This document shows, piece by piece, positions 7,901 through 55,520 of a stretch of 64,000 nt of DNA (the first letter of the stretch is position 1; each line of letters starts with the position of its first letter). A program made the position numbers and the translations under genes. The stretch comes from Anthoceros angustus. Lineage: Eukaryota > Plantae > Anthocerotophyta. The DNA is taken from assembly GCA_010909165.1 (NCBI GenBank), contig MU008168.1:1178001-1242000 (forward strand), read 5' to 3'. A model generated the notes under the pieces. The model saw only the letters and a list, made by a program, of their open reading frames with translations, searched no databases and had not been told where the DNA came from.

Positions 7901-10900
7901 CCGGTCGCTGAGGAAGATTCATCTGAATCCTCCGGCGGAGGAGGGTCACAGCGTGAGGCAGGACGAGGCGCTGGCGCTATCAGGCTTGCAACACAACTTG
8001 TGCTGGAGGAGCTGAATCTGTATGGCTACAAGGGTTTGGGACGGCAGCAGCCTGCCTGCAGTTGAGTGCCATCATCGACAGAACTTCTTCCTCACTGGAC
8101 TTCCTCGGTCTGCAACATCTGGGATTGAGTGCAGAAGGACTGGGTGCCATCGCTGCAGCCCTTGGACGCAATCAGAGCTGTCCAGATTGTCTCTGTGGGA
8201 ACGACATTGGGAATGCTGTCGGGGCGCAACACTTGGCCGACATCCTTACCAACTCGCCCAAGCTCCGCAATCTCTGGATGAGCAACATAGGCATGGACGA
8301 GGAAGGAGCCGTGGTGATTGCACAGGCCCTGGCGCATACCACCACACTGGCTGGGCTTAGAATCGGAGATCCTGCGCCCCGGAATCCAAACCAGCGCGCC
8401 CATGTTCCTCGTTCCATTGCTCCAAGCTTTGGTGTGGCAAACCCTGGCGGATCCTCCAGCTGCTGTTTCTGGCAATCACTCCATCACACGGCTTGTCCTT
8501 GGGTGTCCGGGAGGCCAGGAGGCTGTGGAGGGCTGGGAGAAGCCCTGGCTCAGGTGCTTCGCACCAACCGGGCTCTGAAAGACCTCAAACTATCCAGCTT
8601 CTTCGTCACACGCGGATTGGGAGCTCTGCGGGAAAACAGCAGCATCACCAAACTCCTGGTGTTTCACTCGCGGCAGTCGGAGGATGATGACATGGATCCC
8701 ATCCTGACCACCATCCTGGATGAGTGCAAGACTGTTGAGGAGGTGCAGATCCGGTTTGACAAGCCCTTTGGTCCGTCCAGCTTCACCAAGGCGTTTTTCA
8801 AGGGTTGCTGCAGAAAACCGCAGCATCAACAGGCTGGTGTTGGATGGCTGGGATGGGCTGGACGACGAGATGTTTGAAGACCTGATTCAATCCCTGTCCA
8901 CCAACACCAACAGGTATCTCAGGCTGGATCACATCTCCATCAAGGGCACCTCATGGGAAAAGCAAGGCAGGGGCGAACGTCTGCAGAAAGCGTTGGGAGC
9001 TGCGAGTGCAGCCCAGCTGCGTGCGTTGCTCGCAGACTTGGAGTCCGAGTCGCCAGTGCTGCAAGAACTCCCACGGAACTGGGAGGATCTGTTGATTGTG
9101 GGAAGCTATTTCAATTGCGACTGCGAGGACGGGGAATGTCACCACCGCGAGGAATGGCACTGGGAGGTGCGCTTGCGTCTGCTCACAGCTATCGGCAGAT
9201 GCCGGTCGCTGAGGAAGATTCATCTGAATCCTCGGAAGAGGGTCACAGCGTGAGGAGGACGAGGCGGTGGCGCTCTTATCAGGCTTGCAACACAACCTTG
9301 TGCTGGAGGAGCTGAATCTGTATGGCTACAAGGGGTTTGGGACGGCAGCAGCCTGCCTGCAGTTGAGTGCCATCATCGACAGAACTCATCGCTCACTGGA
9401 CCTCGGTCTGCAATATGTGGATTGAGTGCAGAAGGCCTGGGTGCCATCGCTGCAGCCCTTGGCTCAGCTCAGTGCTGTCCAGATTGTCTCTGTGTGGGAA
9501 CGACATTGGGAATGCTGTCGGGGCGCAACACTTGGCCGACATCCTTACCAACTCGCCCAAGCTCCGCAATCTCTGGATGAGCAACATAGGGATGGAAGGA
9601 GCCGTGGTGATTGCACAGGCCCTGGCGCATACCACCACACTGGCTGGGCTTAGAATCGGAGATCCTGCGCCCCGGAATCCAAACCAGCGCGCCCATGTTC
9701 CTCGTTCCATTGCTCCAAGCTTTGGTGTGGCAAACCCTGGCGGATCCTCCAGCTGCTGTTTCTGGCAATCACTCCATCACACGGCTTGTCCTTGGGTGTC
9801 CGGGAGGCCAGGAGGCTGTGGAGCTGGGCTGGGAGAAGCCCTGGCTCAGGTGCTTCGCACCAACCGGGCTCTGAAAGACCTCAAACTATCCAGCTTCTTC
9901 GTCACACGCGGATTGGGAGCTCTGCGGGAAAACAGCAGCATCACCAAACTCCTGGTGTTCACTCGCAGTCGGAGGATGATGACATGGATCCCATCCTGAC
10001 CACCATCCTGGATGAGTGCAAGACTGTTGAGGAGGTGCAGATCCGGTTTGACAAGCCCTTTGGTCCGTCCAGCTTCACCAAGGCGTTTTTCCAAGGGTTG
10101 CTGCAGAAAACCGCAGCATCAACAGGCTGGTGTTGGATGGCTGGGATGGGCTGGACGACGAGATGTTTGAAGACCTGATTCAATCCCTGTCCACCAACAC
10201 CAACACCCATCTCAGGCTGGATCACATCTCCATCAAGGGCACCTCATGGGAAAAGCAAGGCAGGGGCGAACGTCTGGAGAAAGCGTTGAGAGCTGCGCGA
10301 GTGCAGCCGCAGCTGCGTGCGTTGCAGACCTGGAGTCCCACTCGCCAGTGCTGCAAGAACTCCCATCTGTGGATTTGTGGGAAGCTACTTCAATTGCGAC
10401 TGCGAGGACGGGGAATGTCACCACCGCGAGGAATGGCACTGGGAGGTGCGCTTGCGTCTGCTCACAGCTATCGGCAGATGCCGGTCGCTCAGGAAGATTC
10501 ATCTGAATCCTGGGAGGAGGGTCACAGCGTGAGGAGGACGAGGCGCTGGCGCTGCTATCAGGCTTGCAACACAACCTTGTGCTGGAGGAGGATCTGTATG
10601 GCTACAAGGGGTTTGGGACGGCAGCCTGCCAGGCACTGATTGCCGTCATCGACAGAACTCATCGCTCACTGGAATCCTCGGTCTGCAATATGGGATTGAG
10701 TGCAGAAGGACTGCCATCGCTGCAGCCCTTGGACGCAATGCAGCTCATCAGTGCTGTCCAGATTGTCTCTGTGTGGGAACGACATCGGGAATGCTGTCGG
10801 GGCGCAACACTTGGCCGACATCCTTACCAACTCGCCCAAGCTCCGCAATCTGGATGAGCAACATAGGCATGGACGAGGAAGGAGCCGTGGTGATTGCACA

Positions 10901-13900
10901 GGCCCTGGCGCATACCACCACACTGGCTGGGCTTAGAATCGGAGATCCTGCGCCCCGGAATCCAAACCAGCCGCGCCCATGTTCCTCGTTCCATTGCTCC
11001 AAGCTTTGGTGTGGCACACCCTGGCGGATCCTCCAGCTGCTGTTTCTGGCAATCACTCCATCACACGGCTTGTCCTTGAGTGTCCGGGAGGCCAGGAGGC
11101 TGTGGAGGGCTGGGAGAAGCCCTGGCTCAGGTGCTTCGCACCAACCGGGCTCTGAAAGACCTCAGACTATCCAGCTTCTTCGTCACACGCGGATTGGGAG
11201 CTCTGCGGAAAACAGCAGCATCACCAAACTCCTGGTGTTTCACTCGCGGCAGTCGGAGGATGATGACATGGATCCCATCCTGACCACCATCCTGGATGAG
11301 TGCAAGACTGTTGAGGAGGTGCAGATCCGGTTTGACAAGCCCTTTGGTCCGTCCAGCTTCACCAAGGCGTTTTTCAAGGGTTGCTGCAGAAAACCGCAGC
11401 ATCAACAGGCTGGTGTTGGATGGCTGGGATGGCTGGACGACGAGATGTTTGAAGACCTGATTCAATCCCTGTCCACCAACACCAACACCCACCTCAGGCT
11501 GGATCACATCTCCATCAAGGGCACCTCATGGGAAAAGCAAGGCAGGGGCGAACGTCTGGAGAAAGCGTTGGGAGCTGCGCGAGTGCAGCCGCAGCTGCGT
11601 GCGTTGCTCGCAGACTTGGAGTCCGAGTCGCCAGTGCTGCAAGAACTCCCATCTGTGGATTTGTGGGAAGCTATTTCGATTGCCTTTGCCAGGAGGCCTA
11701 CAGGGAGTGTCCACCGGGGCAGTGGCAGTGGTACGTACGCCTGCGCCTGCTCACAGCTATCGGCAAATGCCGGTCGCTGAGGAAGATTCATCTGAATCCT
11801 CCGGGGAGGAGGGCACTTACAGCGTGAGGGAGGTAGAGGCGCTGGCTCTGCTATCAGGCTTGCAACACAACCTTGTGCTGGAGGAGCTGAATCTGTATAC
11901 AAGGGGTTTGGGACGGCAGCCTGCCTGCAGTTGAGTGCCATCGACAGAACTGCTATCTCACTGGACTTGCGGTCTGCAATATCTGGGATTGAGTGCAGAA
12001 GGACTGGGTGCCATCGCTGCAGCCCTTGGACGCAATGCCAGCTCATCAGTGCTGTCCAGATTGTCTCTGTGGGAACGACATCGGAATGCTGTCGCAACAC
12101 TTGGCCGACATCCTTACCAACTCGCCCAAGCTCCGCAATCTATGGATGAGCAACATAGGCATGGACGAGGAAGGAGCCGTGGTGATTGCACAGGCCCTGG
12201 CGCATACCACTACACTGGCTGGGCTTAGAATCGGAGATCCTGCGCCCGGAATCCAAACCAGCCCGCGCCCATGTTCCTCGTTCCATTGCTCCAAGCTTTG
12301 GTGTGGCACACCCTGGCGGATCCTCCAGCTGCTGTTTCTGGCAATCACTCCATCACACGGCTTGTCCTTGAGTGTCCGGGAGGCCAGGAGGCTGTGGAGC
12401 CGGGGCTGGGAGAAGCCCTGGCTCAGGTGCTTCGCACCAACCGGGCTCTGAAAGACCTCACACTATCCAGCTTCTTCGTCACACGCGGATTGGGAGCTCT
12501 GCGGAAAACAGCAGCATCACCAAACTCCTGGTGTTCCACTCGCGCAGTCGGAGGATGATGACATGGATCCCAACCTGACCGCCATCCTGGATGAGTGCAA
12601 GACTGTTGAGGAGGTGCAGATCCGGTTTGACAAGCCCTTTGGTCCGTCCAGCTTCACCAAGGCGTTTTTCAAGGGTTGCTGCAGAAAACCGCAGCATCAA
12701 CAGGCTGGTGTTGGATGGCTGGGATGGGCTGGACGACGAGATGTTTGAAGACCTGATTCAATCCACCAACACCAACACCTCAGGCTGGATCACATCTCCA
12801 TCAAGGGCACCTCATGGGAAAAGCAAGGCAGGGGCGAACGTCTGGAGACTTGGGAGCTGCGCGGTGCAGCCGCAGCTGCGTGCGTTGCTCGCAGACTTGG
12901 AGTCCGAGTCGCCAGTGCTGCAAGAACTCCCATCTGTGGATTTGTGGGAAGCTATTTCGATTGCCTTTGCCAGGAGGCCTACAGGAGTGTCAACACCGGG
13001 GCAGTGGCAGTGGTACGTACGCCTGCGCCTGCTCACAGCTATCGGCAAATGCCGGTCGCTGAGGAAGATTCATCTGAATCCTCCGGGAGGGGCACTTACA
13101 GCGTGAGGGAGGTAGAGGCGCTGCTATCAGGCTTGCAACACAACCTTGTGCTGGAGGAGCTGGGGCTGTTGGCTACGTGGGCTTTGGGACGGCACCCTGC
13201 CTGCAGGCATTGACTGGCGTCATGGAGAGATGCTATTTCTCATTGGACTTGCTGGGTCTGCAATATCTGGGATTGAGTGCAGAAGGACTGGGTGTCATCG
13301 CTGCAGCCCTTGGACGCAACCGCAGCTCAGTGCTGTCCAGATTGTCTCTTTGTGGGAACGACATCGGAATGCTGTCGGGGCGCAACATTTGGCCGACATC
13401 CTGAGGAATTCGATCGCCCTCCGCAATCTCTGGATGAGCAATATTGGCATGGATGAGGAAGGAGCCGTGCTGATTGCAGAGGCCCTGGCGAATACCACCA
13501 CCCTGCCGAGCTTCAGAATCGGAGATCCTGTGTTCATTGGTTCGATTCTCGAAGCTTTGGTGTGGCACACGCCTGGTGGATCCTCCAGCTGCTGTTTCTG
13601 GCAATCACTCCATCACACGGCTTGTTCTTGAGTGCCCAGGAGGCCAGCAGGCCGTGGAGCCGGACTGGGAGAAGCCCTGGCTGGGGCTTAGAATCGGAGA
13701 TCCTGCGCCCGGAATCCAAACCAGCCCGCGCCCATGTTCCTCGTTCCATTGCTCCAAGCTTTGGTGTGGCACACCCTGGCGGATCCTCCAGCTGCTGTTT
13801 CTGGCAATCACTCCATCACACGGCTTGTCCTTGAGTGTCCGGGAGGCCAGGAGGCTGTGGAGCCGGGGCTGGGAGAAGCCCTGGCTCAGGTGCTTCACCG

Positions 13901-16900
13901 GGCTCTGAAAGACCTCACACTATCCAGCTTCTTCGTCACACGCGGATTGGGAGCTCTGCGGAAAACAGCAGCATCACCAAACTCCTGGTGTTCCACTCGC
14001 GGCAGTCGGAGGATGATGACATGGATCCCAACCTGACCGCCATCCTGGATGAGTGCAAGACTGTTGAGGAGGTGCAGATCCGGTTTGACAAGCCCTTTGG
14101 TCCGTCCAGCTTCACCAAGGCGTTTTTCAAGGGTTGCTGCAGAAAACCGCAGCATCAACAGGCTGGTGTTGGATGGCTGGGATGGGCTGGACGACGAGAT
14201 GTTTGAAGACCTGATTCAATCCCTGTCTACCAACACCAACACCACCTCAGGCTGGATCACATCTCCATCAAGGGCACCTCATGGGGGAAAAGCAACGTCT
14301 GGAGAAAGCGTTGGGAGCTGCGCGTGCAGCTGGGAGTTGGGTGCGGTGCAGCCGCAGCTGCGTTGCTCGCAGACTTGGAGTCCGAGTCGCCAGTGCTGCA
14401 AGAACTCCATCTGTGGATTTGTGGGAAGCTATTTCGATTGCCTTTGCCAGGAGGCCTACAGGAGTGTCAACACCGGGGCAGTGGCAGTGGTACGCCTGCG
14501 CCTGCTCACAGCTATCGGCAAATGCCGGTCGCTGAGGAAGATTCATCTGAATCCTCCGGGAGGATGGGCACTTACAGCGTGAGGAGGTAGAGGCGCTGGC
14601 GCTGCTATCAGGCTTGCAACACAACCTTGTGCTGGAGGAGCTGGGGCTGTTGGCTACGTGGGCTTTGGGACGGCACCCTGCCTGCAGGCATTGACTGGCG
14701 TCATGGAGAGATGCTATTTCTCATTGGACTTGCTGGGTCTGCAATATCTGGGATTGAGTGCAGAAGGACTGGGTGTCATCGCTGCAGCCCTTGGACGCAA
14801 CCGCAGCTCAGTGCTGTCCAGATTGTCTCTTTGTGGGAACGACATCAGGAATGCTGTCGGGGCGCAACATTTGGCCGACATCCTGAGGAATTCGATCGCC
14901 CTCCGCAATCTCTGGATGAGCAATATTGGCATGGATGAGGAAGGAGCCGTGCTGATTGCAGAGGCCCTGGCGAATACCACCACCTGAGCTTAAAATCGGA
15001 GATCCTGTGTTCATTGGTCCAATTCTCGAAGCTTTGGTGTGGCACACCCTGGCGGATCCTCCAGCTGCTGTTTCTGGCAATCACTCCATCACACGGCTTG
15101 TTCTTGAGTGCCCAGGAGGCCAGCAGGCCGTGGAGCCGGACTGGGAGAAGCCCTGGCTCAGGTGCTGCGCACCAACCGTGCTCTCACTGACCTCAGACTT
15201 GCCAGCTTCTTCGTCACACGCGGATTGGAAGCGCTACCTGAAAACAGCAGCATCACCCAACTCCAAGTAAGTCACACGCGGAATTCGGAGGATGATGACA
15301 TGGATCCTATGCTGATCACGATTCTTCAGGAGTGCAAGAATGTCCAGCAGCTGCAGCTTCAGTTTTATAAGCCCTTTGGTCCATCCAACTTCTCCAAGGC
15401 GTTTTTCCAAGGGTTGCGGGATAATCGTAGCATCAAGACGCTTGTGTTGGATGACTGCGAAGGATTGGATGACTACATGTTCCAGAACTTGATGCGGTCT
15501 CTGGGACGCAACTGCAACAACGTCCTGGAGAACATTTCCATCAAGAAAACAACCTGGGAAAGCGAAGGCAAAGGAATACAGATCCAGAATCTGCTCTCAA
15601 GGAACGTGCACAGAAGAAGCGCTGCTCCGCAGGGTAGGTGCCCCAAGCCAGTAGCTTGCTACCCTTGTCCTGATTTGTATCTACTGTCAGAACCCACTAA
15701 CTCAGATGTATACTGACCCCTTCTCACTTGTGCAGGTTCGGAAGGAGTGCCACCACCGGTCACGGCAACTGTGGCAACCTCTGGTGCCGCAGCAGGTAAT
15801 GAAACTTCGTGAATACAATGTGGATTTGATCCAACCACTTCCAAGCTGTTGTTGTTGTTGCAACTAGTTTGAATGCATGTACCGAATGCACCACTTGATG
15901 CTGCTGCTGGCAGACAGTCTGATGATTGACTGATTGGCTGTCTTTGTTTTCACCACAATTTCCAGTTGCTGTTCCTGAGGAGCTCAGTACCCTGCTTGCC
16001 GACCTCGACTCACCTTCGCCTACACTCAGTCGTCTTCCTCGTGTGGAAGCGTTTGGGCACTTGTTCGAGAGGGACGTGGAACATCCAAAGGTGGAACTTG
16101 AACTGCGCATGCGCCTTATGAAGGCTATCGGGAAATGCCCCACACTCAGATTCATAGATCTCGACCCTCTTGGGCGTCGAAATTACAGGGTGACGGTGGC
16201 AGAGGCGATGGCGCTGCTGGAAGGCCTGAGCTCGAATGCAATAGTGGAACGGCTGGACTTGAGTGGCTTCCTTGGTTTTGGAACAGGTGAAGTCTGCGCT
16301 GCAATCGCCGCTATCTTGCAATCCAGCCGCACCTTGCAATTTCTGAATATGGGATACACTGGCATGACTGTCGAAGGACTGGCTTGCATGCGACATAATC
16401 GCAGCACTGTGCTTCGCACCTTGTATCTTTCTGGAAACACGACTGTGGAGAAGGTGTTGGAGCTCAACACCTGGCTGATATCCTGACCAGCACTCCCGCT
16501 CTTCGCAACCTGGGGATGTGGGATACAGGGATGGATGAGGCGGGAGCATTGATGATAGGGGATGCTCTGGCTCAGAACACCACACTTGACTGGCTGAACA
16601 TAGGATTCAATCAAGCGTGGAGGCCAAAGCAGGCAGGGATGATGGCCACGCTGTTAGCTCGAGCATTCACCTACCAAATGTTGCTTTCGCTTCTGTTAAC
16701 GAGTCTGTCACACATCTCCAGCTGGAAGTATGGGGAGCAGGACAGCAGCCTGTCATCGCTGAGTTGGGAGAAGCTGTGGCCCGCATGCTGCGGTCGAACA
16801 TGACTTTAAGGCATCTCGATGTATGTAGCTGCTTTATAAGCCAGGGGTGTGAGGAGTGACAACAGCAGCGTTATCCGTGTGACAGTCCGACATGGTAGCT

Positions 16901-19900
16901 CTAGTGCTAAGGAGGACTAAGAGGATGATGCCAATCCTGCCAGACAGTGGAAAGTTTACAATTAGCTCAGAACAGTTTGGGACCTTTGGGATCATCCGAC
17001 CTCCCAAGACGTTTTCAAATCGTTGCAGGACAATCGTTACCTCAACAGGTTGGTGTTGGATGGCTGGAAAGGGTTGGACGACAATATGTTCCAAGACCTG
17101 TTGCGGGCTCTGCAAGTGAACACCAATTTGAAGAGTATATCGTTCGAGAACACTGTGTGGAAAAGTCAGGAAAAGGAGCTGCAGTGGATGAACTACTACG
17201 CCAAAACAGGGAATACCGGAAAGCTCTGGCAGGGGCTCCAACAATGCCAGTGAAATCATGTCGCCTCGTACTTTGTGGATTTCCATATGCAGGTGAGCCA
17301 CATGCTGAACCCAAAGTTTGTACATCCCAAATGGCGTAGTTTGCAGACTTCACTGCAGTTGTTTCTGTCTTCTCTACAGCTGTTTTCTTGTCTTAACGTT
17401 GTTTTCGTCTCCGAGTGTAATCGGTGGTAAATGTTGCTGTTTCAGGAAAACCACGATACGGAATACGTTGATGAGTATGCAAACACACGAAAACGATGTT
17501 GAGATGGAGGGTGAAACGATTTCGAAGCACATACCTCGAACCCTTGGGTTTGAGGTTGAGGTGATAAAAGATGGTCCAGCCTTGAGAATTACCGTTTGGG
17601 ATCTTGCAGGGCACCAGGAGTTTCATGCTCTTCACGATTTCGTCTTTCCTGCTGTGAATAACTCTTCTCTCTTGTTTGTCTATAACCCGTTCAAATTTGG
17701 TGGTAATTATTCAAGTGCGGAAATGAAGGATAGAAAGGATTTTCGAGATGAATTTATTTATTGGCTTAAATTTATTGCTTCCAACTCATGGTTAGCTCAA
17801 CAGGTGAAACCTTATGTTCATGTGGTGGTAACATTTAATGACAAGCTTGAAGGTAGGATGTCTTGAAATACGGAGGAAGTGTTGGTGATGAAGAAAAAGT
17901 TTATGGCTATTGTGGAAATATCCGATGATCCCACTTTCATCAATGGACAAAGTTGGAAAGATGTGTGTGAAGTACGCAGGCTTGTACAGGAAAAGCTACA
18001 ACAACGTATTAGCACATTGGCTCCAATTCCCAGCATTTGTGAGCAGCTCCGTGTACATGTACGGAAATGGGCTGAGAATGAACATGGTATGCCAATCATT
18101 TCTGTTGAAAAGTTTATCGAGTTGTTTTACTCCACGTGTAAGGTGGCAATAGGGCATCCACTCATCTCATCTTATAGAAGATTTCTTAGAGACTTCATGG
18201 ACAAAGAGGATAGCTGGAAAGTAGTAGCATCATATCTCAAGGATCTGTGGAGATCATATATTTCCAAATGTCACTTATGGTCATCAACCTCCGATGGTTA
18301 GGAATGGGCGTTTTGGTCAGCTGATTAGTATATTTGGTGAACGGACAATAGGCAAGATTGGCTTCAAGTTCAAAATGGGTTCATCAGCAAATATGGGTTG
18401 AGTAGCCTTCTAAAATGTCTTTGAACAAGGTAGGGCTTGATGAAACCATTGTGAGCGAGGAAAAATTCATCCAACTGATGTGTGAGTTGCACCTTTGCTA
18501 TGAAAGTGGAGATGTGGATGGAGAAACTCAATATTTTGTTCCAATAAGTATGTATAAAGAAGAAGATTTATTAGGAGTTGATCAACAGTTAGTATGGCCT
18601 TCACAGAGTCTGGATCATGATTATATCTTTATGGGTTTGCGTTTACAATGTGATGATCAAGATTGTACATTCCTCACACCAGGATTTTTTCCTAGGTTAC
18701 AGGTTGTAACTTTTCTCAAGTTGAACTATCTTTTGTTTTATGTCCTGAAACTTCTTCTTTTGTTTTATTATTATTAACTGTTAACTAGTCTCATTGTTCC
18801 TATATATTGTAGGTACTTTTATACACATATTGTTTGAAAAAAGTGGGTTGATGAGGAAAGACCAATTGATTCAGAATAAAATTGGAGCCTAATGTCCTTT
18901 TAATATCTGCAGAGGCAATGGATATCTTTGTGGAATTTAATGCCAAAGTGGGTTGTTACATAGATATATTGGCCCGATCTACTCAAGGCTATTTAGAGTC
19001 CATGTCATTTTGAGGAACATATTGTATCTCGATTCGGGCATTTTGTGTATGAGGGTTGTGCAGGGTCACTAGTTGAAGGTGTTCTTCGACATGAATGTGT
19101 GGCATCCCTCACTCTATGCGAATAGGAGACGAGTGTATCACACGAGCTAGTTGAAAAAAGCGGTATGCAAAGGATCGATGCTGCACACTACACGCAATCT
19201 TGGAAGTGTATTTGCGACAGCAACACCCCAGGCGACGCAATTATTTTAAAGGCCAACCGAGAGTATGCAACGGTGGTGGATGGTCATGTCATTTTGGGAC
19301 AAAGAGGACCACAAAGCCAAGCGAGTTCCAAGGTTTGAAGCTCTCAATTCTGGATAGTTTGTGTTGCACTAGGTGTCCTTCTTCTCACATGTAGTTTCTA
19401 AGTAGCTTTGCACAAGTAGGCCGTTTCTTGCATACTCTAATTATACCGGCAGATTGAAATCCAGAAGTTGCTTTGGTGGAACTCCTACACTATCCCGCAA
19501 GTAGGGAAGAAGAAGCCTATTGTTGGGAGTAGTTATCCTAACCATGGTGTGGAAGAAGGTAATCGAAGAGGTTTGGCAATGATTGTGAGTGGAAGAGGAT
19601 AGACTGGAGGATCTGAGACAGAGGGCGACTTGATTTTCTTTTCAACACATTGGCATGCTTTTATTAGTGGACAGGCGAGAGTGTCAAAGCACATATTAGG
19701 AAAGTTGCCGATCTCTACTAGCTAAGGACGATTGCTTTGTGTTGCATCAATGCTCATGGGGGATTGAAGAAAATGGCAGAGACTACATTGAAATTGGAAA
19801 ACCACCTCGGGAGAAGCTATATGTTTACGATGACATCGTGAAGCCCATTTGCGAATCCAAGTGGTTGAAAGACAAGCCTAAGGTGTTTCTGATCAATGCT

Positions 19901-20274
19901 TGTCGAGCCATCCAAAGTGGGAAAGCTAAGGACTCTGAAGTCGAGGGTAGCCAAATTGTGAGTGAGAGAGCCGGAGAAGATCTACGCCTGCCTTCTGAGA
20001 AGGATTGTCTCATCTTCTTCTCGACCAGTCATGGACAACAATCGTTTAGAGATGTCAACAATGGCTCAAACTTTATCATAGCTTTGATGGAAGCCATCAT
20101 TGAGGGGTCGGAAAAAAAGGATGATATGTTCAGCATTTTAACATCAGTGATTGCCAAGGTCACGGAGATGCCACGTTGGCTCCGAAATCAAGAAGGGTCT
20201 TATGAGAGGAGACCCAGTGTCCGGTGTTTTCCTCCACACTCACGAGAAAGCTTTGGTGGTGGCCTCGGCCTTAG
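4959..20274 (+). CDS. Giant LRR(8+1 domains)-ROC-COR-caspase-like protein, TORNADO1-related (copy A); frameshifted in this sequence
   Basis: ATG 4959 (MTDPSLPPG). RNI-like LRRs (LSLCGNDIGNAVGAQHLADILTN). Introns ~15,634-15,735 and 15,796-15,965. Walker A GFPYAG|KTT split by an intron at ~17,293-17,446, RTLGFEV, WDLAGHQEFHALHD, VVVTFND. COR-region GLRLQCDDQDCTFLTPGFFPRLQV resembles TRN1. C-terminal KPKVFLINACRA protease domain. Confidence 0.85.
5000..15633 (+). repeat. Coding tandem array of eight ~1.3-1.35-kb LRR-domain units
   Basis: Marker MDP(M/I/N)LT.ILDEC recurs at ~6020, 7370, 8695, 9985, 11270, 12565, 14025 and 15300. Unit-start motif L(R/A)ALLADLES recurs with the same period. Confidence 0.93.
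19560..20274 (+). other. Caspase-like (clan CD, C14) catalytic domain of copy A gene
   Basis: A/B consensus: RRGLAMIVS..DCFVCCINAHGG (His codon 19,755-57)..KPKVFLINACRA (Cys codon 19,901-03)..DCLIFFSTSHGQQSFRDVNNGSNFIIALMEAI..QCPVFSSTLTRKLWWWPRP*. Confidence 0.85.
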
Positions 20275-20459
20275 GTGCAAGGAAGCAGCCCGGCAAAAGT
20301 TGGATTGAGCATGAGCAGAAGGTTCACACATTTCGAGTTGCAGACCAAGAGCATCAGGAAGCACCATTGCTATATGCATTGCTGGAAGACCTAACCACTA
20401 AGCTAAAGGAGGCTGGGTATGTAGACTTCGAGGAAAGCTGGCATGGAGAGCTGAATTGA
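20275..20459 (+). pseudogene. Orphan PPR E2/E+ tail fragment directly after the caspase stop (copy A)
   Basis: ARKQPGKSWIEHEQKVHTFRVADQEHQEAPLLYALLEDLTTKLKEAGYV matches the PPR PG-box/E+ consensus K.PG.SWIE...VH.F...D..H....IY..L..L...MK..GY. Confidence 0.75.
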
Positions 20460-20539
20460 ACACAAGGCAGATGTCGTAAGTAGTAACCTTCATTTATCAG
20501 CAATTAAGCTTAGTACATTCAAAGAGTGATTTCTTCTGG

Positions 20540-22944
20540 CTACAGTTGCTGTTTCCTAAGGTCCTTCTGCAATGCATTCTGCTCACTCCAGTGACGGAAA
20601 GCTTCCCTTACAGGATTGAGCTCTGCATCCTCTATCTGAGCCTGAGAGGTGACATTGTCTATCCAGAAAGACCACACCGGAGTAGTGTGGTCCAACAGGG
20701 GGCCACACTCAGGAGCACCACATTGTGCAAAAATGTTTGCATAATGCTCTTCACCTCGCTGGATGGTTCTAACCTTGAATGTTTAGCATCATTCATGGTT
20801 GCCATCAAGTTCTGGGCATATGAGCTGGGCTGCCGAAAATTGTGGAAGTCGTTGTCTACAAGGACCAAGCCTTCTGACGGTGCAAGTGGCAGGATTATGC
20901 GGGAGTGTCGAGCCAGTGACAGAGGTATCACGTCAGGGGAAGCACTCCCATAACACAGCCACAGCTGTTCCCACCATCTTTCTGATCTGAAAGCAAATCA
21001 GCCAACAGACAACTCTTGACACTCCAGCAAGCAGTACAACCACCAAATGCACACCAGTGCCAGAACAGACAGAACCCGACATCATACAAAATCGTGTGTA
21101 CCTGATGAAGCATAAAGGACTCGCCAGTGATGGACAATCTCAGGAGACGGACATTTCCGCAAATCTCAATCTGAGAACTACAGGAGCAGGAGATGATGTG
21201 CCGAAAATGTGCAGTCCTGATTTTGTCTTTGCTGTCAGGCTCAAACAACCACCTTGCCCTTGCTGTAGATTCATCATCTTCTGCCCCATCTGGAACCTGG
21301 CTTTCTTCATCCAAAGATGATTGGTCATCTTCCGGAATGCTCACACCACTGTCACAATCATCCAGCACCTCCGGGACAACCGCCGATTCATCTTCGGAAG
21401 ACCGACTACCCCTGCGGTTAAAGTAGGCAGGCTTGTTCACGTCTTTGTACTTGCTCCGAGCGGTGTAATTATGGAAAGGATGCCTTCCTGCCAATTGACA
21501 ACAGCCAATGTCACGGGTACTGCTACACGTCCTCCTAACCAAGCTTTCGGTGCCTCAATTGGCTGACAACCTGAAATGCTGATAATATGTTGTTCAGCTC
21601 TGTCACTCGATCTTCACTTGCTGCCATTGAACCAGAGTGATTGATGTCAAGCACAGCCGGTGGTAGTAGATACTCGTATGTGCGGGTAAAACACATCTTT
21701 CTTGAATCGAAGGACCTGCAGAACCAGGATGGTCAGTGCCGAAAACGGCAGTTATGACTGAAACATTCCACACATTGAGCTTAAGTCGAGTCAGACCTGG
21801 GCACTGGGACAACAGAAAACACTTTTATGCTTGCAGGTAAGTGAGCATTGATACTTTCCGCCAATGCAAGCCCGTCCCTGTCATGGACCCATTCTGCTTC
21901 TGGGACTTCCATCTTCATAGAAATGACTGTGCTTATGGAGTGCACCTGAGCTGAACGTAGAAACACAATTAGAACCTTTTGATCTGCGTCACATTCTACC
22001 AACCCAATCACAATGACGGGCAGCTGAAGAGCAACCTCCTCAAATCTAGCAATTTGAGGTGCAGTTACACTAGGACCTTCCAGTCGTGCTAACGACTGGT
22101 AACATATAGTGCATCAGACTTTGACACATACAGAATCTCGTAGGGCACGACGGTTACCCCTTTATCAGTTCGGCTGCTGCGTGCCCATCCAAGTCTGTGA
22201 AGATTCCCAAAGTTACTAGCAAGCATTCCATGAGCCGCCAATATGGCTTTCTCCAGCTCTGCTTCAACGGCTGCAAGAATACAGACCGGAGAAAGCATAA
22301 TACTAGCAGCAGCTCAGCCATTGTAGCTTGGACAGAAGCTACTTACTGGGGACTCCTGTAGACCCTTGCAACTGCAGTCCTGCAAAAACCCGAGTGACTT
22401 CAGGACAACCGCATACTTTCCTCTCAAGCATGATAACCAAATGTCGATCATTTGCTAATCTATTTGGGCTGATCCTTCTACCAACCTTTGTACTCGGTTC
22501 CAACATAGCCAACCCAGAAGCAAACCTTCTTCTTCACCCTCCCATCACCAGGAGCAGTAGCAGACGGTTCCAGCAGCCCGTCACTTCCCTCACCACAGGG
22601 CAAAGCTCAACTGAAGTTCTTTCTGCCATCCTCCATGAAGTCCTCCTACAAGAGTGACCTGATCCACCCTTAGTCTCCAACAGTCCCAGAAATTTTCCTC
22701 TGGTGAATGCTCGAGAGCTTACTTTTCCTGCATACATGACAGCAAGACAGATGATCACCACATTCCGCTTCTATGACCCAACAGGATGCACACCCACGAC
22801 ATAAGAAGGACAACATGATAGGATGTACGCCATCACTCACTCACTTGAGTCACATTGCCCGTGTCCCTTGGCCAGAGTCTGGAAAGAGGGCGGCACCAGG
22901 GTGCAGAGCTTGCAGCTGCTCCACCACACTGCGCTGCTACGCAT
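20540..22944 (-). CDS. tRNA pseudouridine synthase (TruA/PUS1 family), copy 2, full length
   Basis: Same 5' exons as copy 1 (ATG 22,944) plus [41 protein letters not shown] and C-terminus ..DLRKQQL* (stop 20,540-42). A few 1-bp indels. Confidence 0.88.
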
Positions 22945-23684
22945 GGCACCCGAATGCTTCAAAATTTTGCCTCACAGCACACAGTGTGCCAAATACAGTC
23001 TTGTCTCAAGTCCTGTTAGGCAGGACGGCGGATTTCCTCTACATACATGTATTCGGTATCATAAATCTCACACTGATAATATAAAATGGAATCAAATCGA
23101 TGCTTAGTGTTTTCTGCTCGCTGTTTTCGCTTGGTGTTCTCCATATTAGGAGTTGTTTGGAGAAGAACCTTAAGCATTTTGCGCTTCGATCGGTGTAATT
23201 TAGGTATGCCATGATATAAGTTGTTAAGTACTAAGTTCTATGTCAAGAAATTTATCCAAGAGGACTACAATGGACTTTTTCTTCTAATTCACTTCAGAAG
23301 AAGTTAGAAGCATAGGTAATAGAGAGAATTTAAATGTAAGGTTGAGATTGAGCTAATTATTATCTAGCATGTAAAATCGGCGTTTATTTAATACCATATA
23401 GGTAGTGGAGAGCTATTGATTTGGAAAGCCTTACATCTATGACACCATATAACTAGAGAAAGTTATTGATTCAAAACCCGGATGTAAGGAACAATTATGC
23501 AATAAAGAAAGTTGTTGGTACGATTTAAAAATCTGGATACAATGTCAAGTTGACTATTTCTCGATTGCACACCACACAAATAAAACTATTAATATATTAT
23601 TTTATAAAATGATAAAGTTGTGAATCCTCTTCTCTCAAGCATGGAGCTCCCTAGCCTAATGGAAAGCATCTTACTTCTAATAAA

Positions 23685-24404
23685 GGGATTGCGGGTTCGA
23701 ATCTCAGCGTTAGGGATTGCGAGTTTGAATCCCGCTGAGAGAAATCTAGTAACTTGTTGCATTGCATCATTTGAGTTCCTGCCAAGAAACATGAAAATAT
23801 GGGTTCCTATGATCTGAGGATCATCCCGCCGAGAGTACTCTGGCAACTTGTTTCATTGCATCGTCTAGCAACTTGTTCCATTGCATCGTTTGAGTTCGTG
23901 CAGGAAACATGAGTTCATGGAGGAAACTTCAGATAGTAAACATGGGGCTCATCCCGCCAAGAGTACTCTGGCAACGTGTTCCATGGGCAAACTATGAGTT
24001 CATGGAGGAAACTTAAGATAGTAAACATGGGGCTCATCCCGCCAAGAGTACTCTGGCAACGTGTTCCATTGGCAAACATGAGTTCATGCAGGAAACTTCA
24101 GATAGTAAACATGGGGCTCATCCGCCGAGAGTACTCTGGCAACGTGCATCGTTTGAGTTCGTGCAGGAAACATGAGTTCATGGAGGAAACATGGGTTCCG
24201 CCGAGAGCTCATGGAGGAAACTTCAGATACTAAACATGGGGCTCATCCCGCTGAGAGTACGGAGGAAACATGGGTTGCCGCCGAGAACTCATGGAGGAAA
24301 CTTCAGATAGTAAACATGGGGCTCACCCGCCGAGAGTACTCTGGCAACGTGTTCCATTGCATCGTTTCAGTTCGTGTAGGAAACATGAGTTCATGGAGGA
24401 AACT
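23685..24404. repeat. Degenerate ~100-bp tandem satellite, copy R2
   Basis: Near-identical to 1,895-2,618. Confidence 0.9.
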
Positions 24405-26118
24405 TGTGCCCGCGCAGAAGATCTGACATCAGGCAGACAGGTCCATTCCGATGTCCTGAGTAGTGTGCTTAACCCTGATGTATTTGTCGGGAGCTGCCTG
24501 GTGGAAATGTATGCAAGATGTGGGAGGTCGGATGATGCTCGTACAATCTTTGACAAGTTGGACTCGAGAAATGTGGTCACATGGAATACGCTGCTTGGAG
24601 GGTATGCTGAGGGTGGGCGTGGGCAAGAAGCCCTTGCGCTCTATGCAAGTATGCAAGAGGAGGAATCACTCTGCCTGACCATGTCACGTTTTGTGCCTCC
24701 TCAAAGCATGTGGGTGGTAGCAGTGGAACACTACACCAGGGAATGCGGCTTCATTCACAAATACAGGAAGCAGGTCTAGGGCATTGGAGCAGGAAGTCAG
24801 CTACATGACCAGTTTCAGGAGATGGGGCTGCAAGTTGACGTGGTCATTTCAGGCTGCCTGGTGGACATATATGCAAACTGTGGGAGCTTAGAGGATGCCC
24901 GCAGGGTGTTTGACGAGTCAGCCACAAGAGATGTCGTGACTTGGACTGCCATGCTCACTGCGTACGAGGAGCATGGTCTAGCCAAGAAGCGCTGTCTCTG
25001 TATGTGGTTGTGGGCAGCTGCCTAGTGGACATGTATGCGAAATGTGGGTGCTTGGATGATGCTCGGAGCGTGTTCTACACTCTGGATACCAGAGCCATCC
25101 TGACATGGAATGTGATGTTTGCAGGATATGTCTTGCACGGGCTGGGGCAGGAGGCCCTTGATCTCTATGCCGTCATGCATCACCGTGGAATCACGGCCGC
25201 TGATCATGTTACATTCGCCCGTCTTCTAAAGGCATGTGCTCGCATGGGAGCATTGCACACGGGGCACCAGCTCCATGCTCAGGTTCGAGAGAGATGTTTG
25301 AAAGCGGATGTGGTTGTGGGCAGCTGCCTGGTGAACATGTATGCAAAATGCGGGAGCTTGGACTGAGCCTGCAGAGTGTTTGAAAGCCTGCCCACAAAGA
25401 ACGAGGTGACATGGAGTGCGGTAGTTCTTGCAGCGTATGGTCAGCACGGGATGGGTCAGGAAGCTCTCATGTGCTACGACAAAATGGTGATGGCAGGCGT
25501 CCAGGCGAATGAAGTCCCGTTCCTTTCAATTCTCTCTGCCTGCAGTCATGCTGGCCTGGTGTGGGAAGGTCTGCAGTACTTCAAATCCATGGACAGATAT
25601 CACGGCATAGCTCCCAGAGCTGAGCACTATGCCTGTATGATACATCTCCTGGGACGTGCCGGACGCTTCACAGTGGTAGAAGAGCTCTTGTCAAGTATGC
25701 CGATGCAGCCTACTCTTTCCTTTCCATGTTAATGTCTCTGCTGGGCTTCCTGCAGGAAGCACAGTAATGTATCTCTCGCGGAGAACAAGTCTTCGATCTG
25801 GCAGTGCGTCTGCAGCCCACAAATGCCGCAGCATACATGTTGATGTCATAGATGTACGCTGATGCGGGCCTTCCAGAGGACGCCCATAGGGTGGACAAGC
25901 GCAGGAAGACGGAAAGTGCTGCGTGGAAAGAGCCAGGCTGGAGCTGGATAGCGCATGACGAGGAAGTGCACACCTTTCTGGCGGGCCGCGTCCAGAACTC
26001 ACAGCATAGTCAAGTGTATGACATGTTAGCCGAGGTAACCTGTAAGCTTAAGGAGGCAGCACAGGCAGAACAGAGCGTGTGCTCGGTATCCTCATCTCTG
26101 TCCGAGGGTCCCTCATGA
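24405..26118 (+). pseudogene. PLS-class PPR E+ pseudogene (copy B)
   Basis: Nearly identical to 2,619-4,331, with the same frameshifts and premature TAG (~25,849). Confidence 0.88.
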
Positions 26119-26746
26119 TGCGTCCCTCTGCCCTCTACCACGTGCAGGTCTTGAGAAATGGATGGTGTGCATTGCTTCTGGGAAGCTACGTGTATCCACG
26201 ACTTGCTCCGAAGACAGAAGACAGCTCACCTTGGGAGCGAGCATCAGGTGGCACAGGAATATACCTGTTCTGTTGTACATAGCAGTCTTGGTGAGATGAC
26301 AGAGAGCATTGCTTGACGTGGTGAAACACGAACCCAGCAAACAGTGTACGGATTGGGGCTGGACATCTCGCCTCCTCGAAACTATGGAAACTGTCAGGAG
26401 TCGGTCTCATCCGATTCCTTTCATGAAAGGGCCATCTTCAAGGACGAAAGAGAGAGAGTGCAGCGCTCCTGTAGTCCAAAATGTAGTCCGAAACCACTGG
26501 TGTCAGGAATGCCTCGTCGTGCAAAGTCTACAGTGTAGACAGCTTTGTAACAAGTATGTAGCTAGAGGCGCCTTTGCAGGCGTGCAGAAGTCGGAGGCGT
26601 GCAGTGCACGCTTCTCCGCGCCGCTGGCCAGCACTGGCCCAGGAGGAGTGGATTCCACTCTCTCTGGAGTGGGACGCCCTTGGTTCTGCTTGCCTTCTTT
26701 TGCAAGTCCTCCTCACAGGGTGAGACGTTGTTGTGAAGGTTGGGCT

Positions 26747-29700
26747 ATGGCGGATCCATCTCTTCCTGCCGGCGCCGCGCCGGTGGACCTGCTCCAGAGC
26801 CTCGAGTCCCGCTCGCCGCACCTGCGTGCTTTGCTTGCAGACCTGGAGTCCCACTCGCGACAGCCGTCGGAACTGCCGTCTGTTGATTTGTGGGGAAGCT
26901 ACTTCAATTGCGACTGCGAGGACGGGGAATGTCACCACCGCGAGGAATGGCACTGGGAGGTGCGCTTGCGTCTGCTCACAGCTATGGGCAGATGCCGGTC
27001 GCTCACGACAATTCGACTGAATCCTCGGCGGAAGATGGGTCACAGCGTGAGGCAGGACGAGGCGGTGGCGCTCTTATCAGGCTTGCAATACAACTTTGGG
27101 CTGACGGTGCTGGATCTGTATGGCTACAAGGGTTTTGGGACGGCAGCAGCCTGCCTGCAGTTGAGTGCCATCATCGACAGAACTTATCCCCCACTGGAAT
27201 CCCTCGGTCTGCAATATGTGGGATTGAGTGCAGAAGGCCTGGGTGCCATCGCTGCAGCCCTTGGACGCAATGCCAGCTCATCAGTGCTGTCCAGCTTGTC
27301 TCTGTGTGGGAACGACATTGGGAATGCTGTCGGGGCGCAACACTTGGCCGACATCCTTACCAACTCGCCCAAGCTCCGCATACTCTCGATGAGCAACGTA
27401 GGGATGGACGAGGAAGGAGCCGTGGTGATTGCACAGGCCCTGGCGCATACCACCACACTGGCCGAGCTCACAATCGGAGATCCTGCGCCCCGGAATCCAA
27501 ACCAGCGCGCCCATGTTCCTCGTTCCATTGCTCCAAGCTTTGGTGTGGCACACCCCAGGCGGATCCTCCAGCTGCTGTTTCTGGCAATCACTCCATCACA
27601 CGGCTTGTCCTTGGGTGTCCGGGAGGCCAGGAGGCTGTGGAGCCGGGGCTGGGAGAAGCCCTGGCTCAGGTGCTTCACCAACCGGGCTCTGAAAGACCTC
27701 AAACTATCCAGCTTCTTCGTCACACGCGGATTGGGAGCTCTGCGAAAACAGCAGCATCACCAACTCCTGGTGTTCACTCGCCGCAGTCGGAGGATGATGA
27801 CATGGATCCCATGCTGACCACCATCCTGGATGAGTGCAAGACTGTTGAGAGGTGCAGATCCAGTTTGACAAGCCCTTTGGTCCGTCCAGCTTCACCAAGG
27901 CGTTTTTCCAAGGGTTCCTGCAGAAAACCGCAGCATCAACAGGCTGGTGTTGGATGGCTGGGATGGGCTGGACGACGAGATGTTTGAAGACCTGATTCAA
28001 TCCCTGTCCACCAACACCCACCTCAGGCTGGAGCATCTCCATCAAGGGCACCTCATGGGAAAAGCAAGGCAGGGCGAACGTCTGCAGAAAGCGAGATGCA
28101 TTGCGAGTGCAGCCGGAGCTGGTGCGTTGCTTGCAGACCTGGAGTCCACTCGCCAGGGCGGTCCAGGTCGTGGTTAGTGTTGATTCGTGACGCGACTCCC
28201 ATGGAACTGGGAGGACTGTTGATTCGTGGGGAAGCTACTTCAATTGCGACTGCGAGGACGGGGAATGTCACCACCGCGAGGAATGGCACTGGGAGGTGCG
28301 CGTCTGCTCACAGCTATCGGCAAATGCCGGTCGCTGAGGAAGATTCATCTGAATCCTCGGCGGAAGAGGGTCACAGCGTGAGGAGGACGAGGCGCTGGCG
28401 CTCTTATCAGGCTTGCAACACAACTTTGGGCTGAGGTGCTGAATCTGTATGGCTACAAGGGTTTTGGGACGGCAGCAGCCTGCCTGCAGTTGAGTGCCAT
28501 CATAGAACTTCTTCCTGACTTGCTCGGTCTGCAATATGTGGGATTGAGTGCAGAAGGACTGGGTGCCATCGCTGCAGCCCTTGGACTCATCAGCTGTCCA
28601 GCTTGTCTCTGTGTGGGAACGACATTGGGAATGCTGTCGGGGCGCAACACTTGGCCGACATCCTTACCAACTCGCCCAAGCTCCGCATATCTGGATGAGC
28701 AACATAGGGATGGACGAGGAAGGAGCCGTGGTGATTGCACAGGCCCTGGCGCATACCACCACACTGGCTGGGCTTAGAATCGGAGATCCTGCGCCCCGGA
28801 ATCCAAACCAGCGCGCCCATGTTCCTCGTTCCATTGCTCCAAGCTTTGGTGTGGCACACCCAGGCGGATCCTCCAGCTGCTGTTTCTGGCAATCACTCCA
28901 TCACACGGCTTGTCCTTGGGTGTCCGGGAGGCCAGGAGGCTGTGGAGCCAGGCTGGGAGAAGCCCTGGCTCAGGTGCTTCGCACCAACCGGGCTCTGAAA
29001 GACCTCAAACTATCCAGCTTCTTCGTCACACGCGGATTGGGAGCTCTGCGGGAAAACAGCAGCATCACCAAACTCCTGGTGTTCACTCGCGGCAGTCGGA
29101 GGATGATGACATGGATCCCATCCTGACCACCATCCTGGATGAGTGCAAGACTGTTGAGGAGGTGCAGATCCGGTTTGACAAGCCCTTTGGTCCGTCCAGC
29201 TTCACCAAGGCGTTTTTCAAGGGTTGCTGCAGAAAACCGCAGCATCAACAGGCTGGTGTTGGATGGCTGGGATGGGCTGGACGACGAGATGTTTGAAGAC
29301 CTGATTCAATCCCTGTCCACCAACACCAACAGGACCTCAGGCTGGATCACATCTCCATCAAGGGCACCTCATGGGAAAAGCAAGGCAGGGGCGAACGTCT
29401 GGAGAAAGCGTTGGGAGCTGCGAGTGCAGCCGCAGCTGCGTGCGTTGCTGCAGACTTGGAGTCCCACTCGCCAGTGCTGGGTGCGCCCACGGAACTGGGA
29501 GGATCCTGTTGATTTTGTGCTACTTCAATTGCGACTGCGAGGACAGGGAATGTCACCACCGCGAGGAATGGCACTGGGAGGTGCGCTTGCGTCTGCTCAC
29601 AGCTATCGGCAGATGCCGGTCGCTCAGGAAGATTCAACTGAATCCTGCGGAAGAGGGTCACAGCGTGAGGCAGGACGAGGCGGCGCTCTTATCAGGCTTG

Positions 29701-38028: not shown

Positions 38029-38213
38029 GTGCAAGGAAGCAGCCCGGCAAAAGTTGGATTGAGCATGAGCAGAAGGTTCACACATTTCGAGTTGCAGACC
38101 AAGAGCATCAGGAAGCACCATTGCTATATGCATTGCTGGAAGACCTAACCACTAAGCTAAAGGAGGCTGGGTATGTAGACTTCGAGGAAAGCTGGCATGG
38201 AGAGCTGAATTGA
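38029..38213 (+). pseudogene. Orphan PPR E2/E+ tail fragment (copy B)
   Basis: Same sequence as 20,275-20,459. Confidence 0.75.
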
Positions 38214-38292
38214 ACACAAGGCAGATGTCGTAGTAGTAACCTTCATTTATCAGCAATTAAGCTTAGTACATTCAAAGAGTGATTTCTTCTGG

Positions 38293-40696: not shown

Positions 40697-41439
40697 GGCA
40701 CCCAGAATGCTTCAAAATTTTGCCTCACAGCACACAGTGTGCCAAATACAGTCTTGTCTCAAGTCCTGTTAGGCAGGACGGCGGATTTCTACATACATGT
40801 ATTCGGTATCATAAATCTCACACTGATAATATAAAATGGAATCAAATCGATGCTTAGTGTTTTCTGCTCGCTGTTTTCGCTTGGTGTTCTCCATATTAGG
40901 AGTTGTTTGGAGAAGAACCTTAAGCATTTTGCGCTTCGATCGGTGTAATTTAGGTATGCCATGATATAAGTTGTTAAGTACTAAGTTCTATGTCAAGAAA
41001 TTTTATCCAAGAGGACTACAATGGACTTTTTCTTCTAATTCACTTCAGAAGAAGTTAGAAGCATAGGTAATAGAGAGAATTTAAATGTAAGGTTGAGATT
41101 GAGCTAATTATTATCTAGCATGTAAAATCGACGTTTATTTAATACCATATAGGTAGTGGAGAGCTATTGATTTGGAAAGCCTTACATCTATGACACCATA
41201 TAACTAGAGAAAGTTATTGATTCAAAAACCCCAGATGTAAGGAACAATTATGCAATAAAGAAAGTTGTTGGTACGATTTAAAAAATCTGGATACAATGTC
41301 AAGTTGACTATTTCTCGATTGCACACCACACAAATAAAACTATTAATATATTATTTTATAAAATGATAAAGTTGTGAATCCTCTTCTCTCAAGCATGGAG
41401 CTCCCCTAGCCTAATGGAAAGCATCTTACTTCTAATAAA

Positions 41440-42295
41440 GGGATTGCGGATTCGAATCTTAGTGTTAGGCGATTGCGAGTTTGAATCCCGCTGAGAGAAC
41501 TCTAGCAACTTGTTGCATCATTTGAGTTCGTGCTAAGAAACATGAAAATATGGGTTCCTAGGATCTGAGGATCATCTCATCGAGAGTTTGGCAACGTGTT
41601 CTATTGCATCGTTTGAGTTCGTGCAGGAAACATGAGTTCATGGAGGAAACTTCAAATAGTAAACATGGGGCTCATGCCGTCGAGAGTACGGAGGAAACAT
41701 GGGTTCCCGCCGAGAACTCATGGAGGAAACTTCATATAGTAAACATGGGGCTCATCCCGCCAAGAGTACTCTGGCAACATGTTCCATTGCATCGTTTCAG
41801 TTTGTGTAGGAAACATGAGTTCCCACCAACAGTACTCTAGCAACTTACTCTCTGGCAACTTGTTTCATTACATTATCTTGCAACTTGTTCCATTGCATCG
41901 TTTGAGTTCGGATAGTAAACATAGGGTTCATCAAGAAATGTCATGGGTTCCTGTTGGGAGTACTCTGGCAACTTGTTCCATTGCATCATTCGAGTTCGGA
42001 TAGTAAACATGGGGTTCATTAGGAAATATGAGTTCTTGCTGGGAGTACTCTGGCAACTTGTTCCATTGCATCGTTTGAGTTCGGATAGTGAACATGGGGT
42101 TCATTCGTTAGTGCAGAAAATATGGGTTCGAATCCCACTGAGAGTACTCTGACAACTTGTTCCATTGCATCGTTTGAGTTCGTGTAGGAAACATGGGGTT
42201 CATGCTAATGCCGGCTGGAGTACTCTAGCAACTTGTTCCATTGCATCCTGTGTTTTCATGATTTGAGTTGTGTAGGAAACATGAGGTTCATGCTA
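41440..42295. repeat. Degenerate satellite, copy R3 (diverged; right boundary of the duplication)
   Basis: Same motifs (agtactctggcaacttgttccattgcatcgtttgagttcg) but clearly diverged from R1/R2 from ~41,448 onward. Confidence 0.88.
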
Positions 42296-55300: not shown

Positions 55301-55520
55301 AGTGCTCCCTCTTTACCTTCGCACCCCTGTGTCTTTCAAATTAAGGATGATTATAGGTCATCTTCGTGTCGAGTCTCACCGTCTTAGGATTGAGACGGAT
55401 AGATAGCTACGTCCTAAGCCACCAAAGGAGTCCAGAATCTGCAGGTTATGCAATAGGGGGGTAGAGACTGAAGAACACTTTGTGTTCCTCTGTCATATCT
55501 ACTATCCCTCTATTTACAAC
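52340..55520 (+). mobile_element. Decayed non-LTR retrotransposon (LINE): ORF1 remnant, AP-endonuclease, RT, C-terminal zinc-finger
   Basis: LRGQDIYIGDDLT (ORF1). SWNCNG/LIFLTETH/LVGDFNA/LDYVL/SDH (endonuclease, 52,885-53,850). PSNYR, FVDFKRAFDS and degenerate gatgacattgccc YADD region (RT). CRLCNRGVETEEHFVFLC. Stops and frameshifts present. Confidence 0.88.

Follow-up and report, generated by a model that had tools for sequence, protein, structure and literature searches.

Organisation of the locus

A 64,000-bp stretch of the genome of Anthoceros angustus (Anthocerotophyta; GenBank assembly GCA_010909165.1, contig MU008168.1, positions 1,178,001–1,242,000 of the forward strand), hereafter called the window, contains two copies, A and B, of a broken gene that ends in a caspase-type domain. 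The copies lie in a tandem segmental duplication with a unit of approximately 18–22 kb. Each unit consists of a fragment of a PLS-type pentatricopeptide repeat (PPR) gene, an array of leucine-rich repeat (LRR) super-repeats, a Roc/COR-like stretch and a relic of the caspase-type domain. The parts are listed below, with positions counted from the first base of the window.

1383–39621, no strand: tandem segmental duplication with both gene copies (A ~1383–21870, B ~23195–39621, partial third unit 39621–41789; 94–97% identity in self-BLAST)
5027–17250, plus strand: upstream part of copy A, G+C-rich, RNI-like LRR super-repeats of ~1.3 kb (self-BLAST, tblastn with one repeat unit, LRR_6 on the copy B counterpart)
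17318–19530, plus strand: Roc/COR-like middle part of copy A (DxxG motif WDLAGHQEF, Pfam Roc match, language-model features)
19531–20274, plus strand: caspase-type (Peptidase_C14, C14A-like) relic of copy A, beginning with SYPNHG and ending with the terminal TAG (20272–20274; Pfam, phmmer against PDB, tblastn)
37286–38028, plus strand: relic of the same domain in copy B, with two TAG codons in common with copy A and private deletions at the positions matching 19674, 19695, 19851, 19889, 19936–37 and 19984 of copy A

The LRR array was recognised by Pfam through its copy B counterpart (LRR_6, E 1.3e-8). It is frame-broken in both copies; only the first two units of copy A can be read in a single frame, and the later units are scattered among two to four frames. 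The array resembles a satellite of coding sequence that was recently amplified and is now decaying. The repeated element is a whole LRR domain of ~440 aa, present as 1.3-kb units about eight times in copy A (5079–15600) and five times in copy B (26867–33300).

For the middle part, the Pfam Roc match (E 0.0012, 19.5 bits) is below the 27-bit cut-off, and language-model features gave scores of 0.92–0.94 to Roc/COR-A clusters. A PDB search with the Roc-like part yielded GTPase matches that were not significant. The arrangement of an LRR array, a Roc-like GTPase with DxxG, a COR-like region and an attached effector resembles that of the ROCO proteins (DAPK1, LRRK2 and the plant protein TORNADO1). 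In those proteins the effector is a kinase or a death domain, whereas the effector in the window is a caspase-type protease; in addition, the Roc score in the window is sub-threshold and the gene has decayed.

Between 17300–21870 and 35184–39621 the divergence is a mosaic, with 7.2% substitutions and 34 indels in the Roc/COR part, 2.5% and 15 indels in the caspase relic, and a single substitution and three 1-bp indels in the 1.6-kb 3' flank (99.9% identity). Such a pattern suggests that the units underwent gene conversion or arose by recombination.

Identity of the caspase-type domain

Pfam family PF00656 (Peptidase_C14), which spans caspases, metacaspases, paracaspases and orthocaspases alike, matched the longest open piece of copy A (19700–20218, E 3.5e-20) and positions 37720–38025 of copy B (E 1.7e-12). 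When the window pieces were searched against PDB with phmmer, all 60 best matches of each piece were caspases (caspase-7, -3, -8 and insect caspase-1), the top match being a reconstructed ancestral caspase-3/6/7 small subunit (E 2e-9). Neither metacaspases nor paracaspases were found among the best 60 PDB matches of any query. When 1.84 billion representative proteins were searched exhaustively with HMMER, 324 matches were obtained, and approximately 140 of the best 150 contain QAC(R/Q/K)G or NACRG. The best named matches were mollusc and insect caspases, with 30–38% identity of the domain to any animal caspase. The metacaspase motif D(A/S)CHSG is absent from the domain, its catalytic motif being INACRA. 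The sequence evidence supports a domain of the animal caspase (C14A) type and argues against a metacaspase.

The domain has the motif order and, judging from the model of its closest intact relative, the fold of animal caspases such as human caspase-3, -6, -7 and -8 (GLA-IVS strand, R-x-G, xHG, xACRx, STxxGxxSxR, Q-P...STL-K-L), and shares their small-subunit S1 arginine. Differences are found in the catalytic motifs, which are QACRG and SHG in animal caspases, NACRG and AHG in the plant relatives described below, and NACRA in the window copies. The fusion partners differ as well; animal caspases are fused to CARD or DED, the window domain to LRR-Roc/COR and the domain of mosses to NB-ARC-LRR. 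Unlike the animal caspases, both window copies are very probably pseudogenes. Two regions of the domain bear on the substrate pocket:

19862–19906, plus strand: catalytic-Cys motif region KDKPKVFLINACRA, with Gln283 changed to Asn and the final Gly to Ala; in frame in copy A, split by a 1-bp deletion in copy B
20000–20056, plus strand: start of the small subunit DCLIFFSTSHGQQSFRD, with the Arg341-equivalent (SFR), aligned to the YSTxPGYYSWR block of caspase-7 and -3

An initial annotation of this DNA had stated that the small-subunit arginine is kept and that the Gln of QACRG is replaced by Asn, and both statements were confirmed (SFR and INACRA, respectively). In caspase-1 numbering, the S1 pocket in the window comprises the Arg341-equivalent, Asn for Gln283, and an Arg179-equivalent that is not readable; the latter position falls in the stop-broken stretch GRG(stop)TGGS, which is 2 residues shorter than in the relatives. 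Asn for Gln283 is a family-wide trait (NACRG), and the Ala after NACR was seen in the window copies only.

For structural comparison the closest intact relative, P0004, was used in place of the broken window sequence. Its AlphaFold model, made with a 45-sequence alignment, had a predicted local distance difference test (pLDDT) score of 84.6. Comparison with caspase-3, -8 and -9 gave Z-scores of 27–28 and root-mean-square deviations (rmsd) of 2.1–2.4 over ~210 residues; over all caspases compared the values were 21–28 and 2.1–3.1, respectively. MALT1 (Z 20.9, rmsd 4.1) ranked below eight caspase-family entries, including the caspase-like domain of c-FLIP. The metacaspases scored 11.5–18.2 (AtMC4 18.2, AtMC9 17.6, yeast Yca1 14.5) and legumain 17.3. 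In Foldseek searches with the model, the top 50 PDB entries and the top 30 AFDB clusters were all caspases. The predicted fold supports P0004 as a caspase-type protein.

Plant metacaspases (AtMC4 and AtMC9) and the paracaspase MALT1 have the caspase-hemoglobinase fold of clan CD and the His/Cys dyad in common with the family, but their structural scores are lower (Z 17.6–20.9 versus 27–28) and they are missing from the sequence match lists. Metacaspases and paracaspases have other catalytic motifs and Arg/Lys specificity. The proposal of the initial annotation that the domain is an animal-type caspase rather than a metacaspase was borne out by the PF00656 matches, the all-caspase PDB matches and the ranking of the P0004 model; instead of a grouping with metacaspases or paracaspases, both the sequence lists and the structural ranking of P0004 favoured caspases.

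Intact relatives in hornworts and mosses

The closest non-animal relatives of the domain (P0004, P0007, P0009, P0010, P0012, P0119 and P0127) carry the signature AHG and (I/V)N(A/S)CRG. P0007 and P0127 are transcripts of the hornwort Nothoceros aenigmaticus. Transcripts EP00246 P009469 and P000030 of this species are the closest named relatives of the window domain (39–41% identity). They show the same motifs and, like the window sequence, a C-terminal end right after STL-K-L; unlike the window copies they are expressed open frames, although partial.

On eukaryote-like contigs, four other relatives form the first open reading frame (ORF), immediately upstream of NB-ARC-LRR ORFs. For one of these, the NB-ARC-LRR part is 74% identical to KC19_5G008800 and 64% identical to KC19_5G008700 of the moss Ceratodon purpureus, both of which are annotated proteins with PF00656 ahead of NB-ARC and LRRs. 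KC19_5G008700, which carries the automatic UniProt name 'Caspase family p20 domain-containing protein', is 36% identical to a window piece over 97 aa (E 7e-16). The Ceratodon proteins share with the window the SYP start and the AHG, NACRG and FSTxxG..S.R signatures. Their caspase domain is N-terminal, before NB-ARC, whereas that of the window is C-terminal, behind the Roc/COR-like switch. KC19_5G008800 retains R-x-G, SAHG, INACRG and ESFR and is intact, in contrast to the window copies. In residues 133–337 of KC19_5G008700 (P0295), a nucleotide-binding LRR receptor (NLR) of 1508 aa, the catalytic His is replaced by Tyr (SAYGN) and NACRG by NLCTW. This protein is a predicted natural pseudo-caspase in an otherwise complete receptor, encoded beside the intact neighbour gene KC19_5G008800.

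P0010 could be aligned end to end with human caspase-6 (E 7.5e-22), with Arg64, His121, Cys163 and Arg220 all matched. Both S1 arginines are kept in P0004, P0010 and P0290, and the Gln is Asn in all three. A word-based homology search with P0004, the length window of which leaves out long fusion proteins, returned only the query and one spider caspase. A pattern scan of metagenomes gave 15 short contigs, which contained nothing informative on the family.

Phylogeny

A quick tree of 114 domains was computed by maximum likelihood, without an outgroup; the window sequence was included as a read-through, with an X at each break. The window sequence and the plant relatives formed one clade among the animal caspases (SH-like approximate likelihood ratio test, SH-aLRT, 93), which in this unrooted tree was not nested in any supported animal group. 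The plant clade is 25–40% identical to animal caspases, approximately the distance between animal subfamilies. Among 185,579 species of bacteria and archaea, a pattern scan revealed no relative; this is weak evidence of absence, because the scan depended on a single peptide pattern. The family may have originated by ancient vertical descent with loss, or by an old transfer into bryophytes.

Frame breaks in the two copies

Breaks were mapped by three-frame translation, by alignment of copy A to copy B, and by tblastn searches in which P0004, P0007 and P0010, all intact relatives, served as queries. Neither copy contains an open reading frame across the domain, and the tblastn alignments run through three frames of copy A. 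The following lesions were identified:

19600–19602, plus strand (37355–37357 in copy B): first in-frame TAG, one codon ahead of TGGS-DRGRLDFLF, at or adjoining the Arg179-equivalent; same 17-mer in both copies
19665–19667, plus strand (37424–37426 in copy B): second in-frame TAG, between the conserved blocks DRGRLDFLFNTL and WTGESVKAHIRKVADL; both flanks in one frame in copy A
19614–19615, plus strand: 2-bp insertion (TG) specific to copy A, which causes a frameshift between TGGS and DRGRL; in copy B the conserved frame runs on unbroken
19717–19761, plus strand: three deletions specific to copy A, 1 bp after 19717, 2 bp after 19737 and 1 bp after 19757 (A/B alignment, tblastn)
20212–20213, plus strand: 1-bp deletion in a C run, specific to copy A, by which the C-terminal QCPVFSSTLTRKL is cut off

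Over the domain the two copies differ by 18 substitutions and 15 indels, 13 of which are not multiples of three. Private frame-breaking indels of 1–2 bp number 5 in copy A and 6 in copy B. In copy A, the deletions after 19737 and 19757 together turn the catalytic-His motif CCINAHG into LHQCSW. In copy B, the deletion at the position matching 19889 lies between KVF and LINACRA, so that the Cys motif is split. The catalytic His (INAHGG) and Cys (INACRA) are thus recognisable, but not in one polypeptide: the His is out of frame in copy A and the Cys is split in copy B.

The initial annotation had quoted the domain as a protein consensus of the two copies. All of its motifs are present in the DNA at about the reported positions, but the protein itself is encoded by neither copy, as it was stitched together from two copies and three frames. 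RRGLAMIVS is found in both copies. DFLFNTLGF is found in copy B only, copy A reading NTLA, and DCFVCCINAHGG can be read in a single frame in copy B only, since copy A reads DCFVLHQCSWG past its 2-bp and 1-bp deletions. Conversely, KDKPKVFLINACRA is in a single frame in copy A only, and QCPVFSSTLTRKL is again in frame in copy B only. The quoted 'EGDL' is a wrong-frame reading; the conserved frame gives DRGRLDFLF. Nor was the suggestion borne out that a possibly Asp-specific protease is encoded here: both copies very probably are pseudogenes, and the Arg179-equivalent lies in the stretch broken by the first TAG.

Logan contigs of three runs were compared with positions 16000–20700; these contigs are short and derive from several paralogues. 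In a contig of DNA run X2, which was produced with another assembler, the copy B deletions at 19936 and 19984 recur, and DNA-run contigs back the five-G state of copy A at 19757. Because these states were seen in independent contigs, the lesions are not just assembly noise. Splice joints or proof of transcription were not found in the Logan contigs of the three runs over this region. One contig of a run labelled 'RNA?' is ~98.5% identical to copy A over 19743–20043, with the sixth G restored at 19757 and none of the other indels of copy B. This combination points to a third paralogue elsewhere in the genome, which is possibly expressed. Introns that would remove the TAG codons (a GTGAGT...TAG pair near 19587–19602 and a pyrimidine-rich TAG at 19665) were considered and ruled out, as the surroundings align codon by codon to the intact relatives.

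Other features of the window

The remaining features of the window are listed below.

2076–2620, 23864–24405 and 41581–41822: short tandem repeats of ~84 bp in or beside the PPR fragment with which each duplication unit begins
20928–22300 and 38679–40050, minus strand: putative tRNA pseudouridine synthase (Pus1/TruA-like) with introns, directly downstream of each caspase relic
43436–44011, minus strand: ORF with a match to a GIY-YIG domain-containing protein (PF19239, E 8e-10) over the N-terminal 35 residues only
46092–47873: intact 1.8-kb SUV3 helicase ORF
52885–55406, plus strand: retroelement of the long interspersed nuclear element (LINE) type, with two ORFs, the first for an apurinic-like endonuclease (PF03372, E 1e-15) and the second without Pfam match

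The Pus1/TruA-like assignment is based on the motifs RTYEYLLP and GESFMLHQV, which were spotted by eye; a 204-aa exon is identical in both units and has no Pfam match. The SUV3 protein is 69–72% identical to those of Ceratodon (moss), Marchantia (liverwort) and Diphasiastrum (lycophyte), and its similarity to seed-plant proteins is lower. With the PLS-type PPR genes, it marks the genomic surroundings as those of a land plant, in keeping with the Nothoceros sequences as nearest named relatives of the protease domain.

Interpretation of the locus

We consider it very likely that two statements hold together. The first is that the tandemly duplicated copies are both pseudogenes, derived from an LRR-Roc/COR-like-caspase gene that was dead before the duplication, and have decayed independently since. 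The second is that the domain represents a genuine land-plant branch of the C14A-type caspase family which has hardly been described, with members in hornworts and, as NB-ARC-LRR fusions, in mosses. As both TAG codons are common to copies A and B, the gene was already dead at the time of the duplication.

Several observations weigh against this interpretation. The domain has 15 indels to 18 substitutions, an unusually large share of indels for neutral decay, and the near-identical 3' flank also contains its three 1-bp indels between the copies; errors in the assembly could thus account for some of the 1-bp differences. The first TAG could alternatively be read as a common 1-bp deletion, which would restore R-x-G and would still be a common frame break. 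Contigs of the 'RNA?' run cover parts of the domain, so that transcription of the locus is possible. Finally, the Roc assignment depends on weak scores, and the protease role of the whole family is a prediction from sequence and model.

Some of these observations would fit a gene that is intact and functional, the breaks being either errors of assembly, in a duplicated region that is difficult to polish, or parts that are spliced out. The high share of 1–2 bp indels, extending into the 99.9%-identical flank, and the near-identical 'RNA?' contig with its sixth G are in line with such a gene. However, both TAG codons are base substitutions common to the two copies, inside blocks that align to intact relatives, and are therefore neither introns nor indel errors. 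Most indels lie outside homopolymers, the copy B deletions recur in the contigs of a DNA run, and the SUV3 ORF in the same window is unbroken over 1.8 kb. The contig with the extra G lacks the other indels of copy B and hence represents a third paralogue, neither A nor B. An intact gene at this locus is improbable.

We also attach little probability to a catalytically dead yet useful module, i.e. a decoy, a c-FLIP-like pseudo-caspase or a transcribed regulatory RNA. Pseudo-protease members do exist, as illustrated by the annotated Ceratodon NLR KC19_5G008700 that has lost both His and Cys, and RNA coverage of the locus is possible. A pseudo-enzyme needs an open frame, however, and there is none at this locus; with thirteen differences between the copies that break the frame, the protein seems to be under no constraint.

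That the domain is animal DNA, present as contamination or through a very recent transfer, is suggested by the mollusc and insect caspases among its best named matches. This is very improbable, since the domain sits between plant genes (PPR, Pus1-like, SUV3) in a tandem duplication, has just 30–38% identity to any animal caspase, and clusters with hornwort and moss sequences (SH-aLRT 93) with which it has the AHG and NACR signature in common. Although PF00656 covers these groups too, there is next to no chance of a metacaspase, paracaspase or bacterial orthocaspase that resembles caspases in a few motifs only, given the absence of metacaspases and paracaspases from the best 60 PDB matches of any query, the lack of a D(A/S)CHSG motif, the lead of 7–14 Z units of caspases in the ranking of the P0004 model, and the absence of a bacterial or archaeal relative in the pattern scan.

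Proposed mechanism of the intact members and significance

Caspases have been considered restricted to animals, with plants having metacaspases only (PMC10896300, PMC12521494). In a literature search we found no description of caspase-type (C14A) domains in land plants, and moss members are already in public databases under automatic caspase annotation. Together, the locus and its intact hornwort and moss relatives indicate that bryophyte genomes hold domains which by sequence and predicted fold are caspases, fused directly to receptor-type switches. The intact members make two questions testable: the source of plant 'caspase-like' activity, and whether a receptor can carry its own protease executioner. 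The locus alone tells us only that family members are duplicated and decay; its value lies in the family and not in this copy.

By analogy to animal initiator caspases on apoptosomes and inflammasomes, a mechanism can be proposed for the intact genes in which the protease would be carried by the receptor itself. Once a ligand is sensed by the repeat array, the switch, Roc/COR-like in hornworts or NB-ARC in mosses, would drive self-association and pair two protease domains, which would be activated by induced proximity or dimerisation and by cleavage in the Asp-containing linker. Activated members would cut after an acidic residue. A basic S1 pocket with a preference for an acidic P1 residue is a reasonable inference for the intact members, because two S1 arginines are kept and Asn replaces Gln283. 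At the locus itself this mechanism is impossible, as neither copy has an open frame that includes both the His and the Cys motif.

We tentatively propose, as a possibility that we judge rather less than even, that the intact hornwort LRR-Roc/COR-caspase and moss caspase-NB-ARC-LRR proteins are active acid-specific caspases that serve as built-in executioners of plant immune receptors. If this is true, true caspases would not have been invented by animals, and early-diverging land plants would possess a sensor-to-caspase connection of the inflammasome type. The dead tandem pair of A. angustus would then be a record of the rapid birth-and-death turnover that is typical of such receptors.

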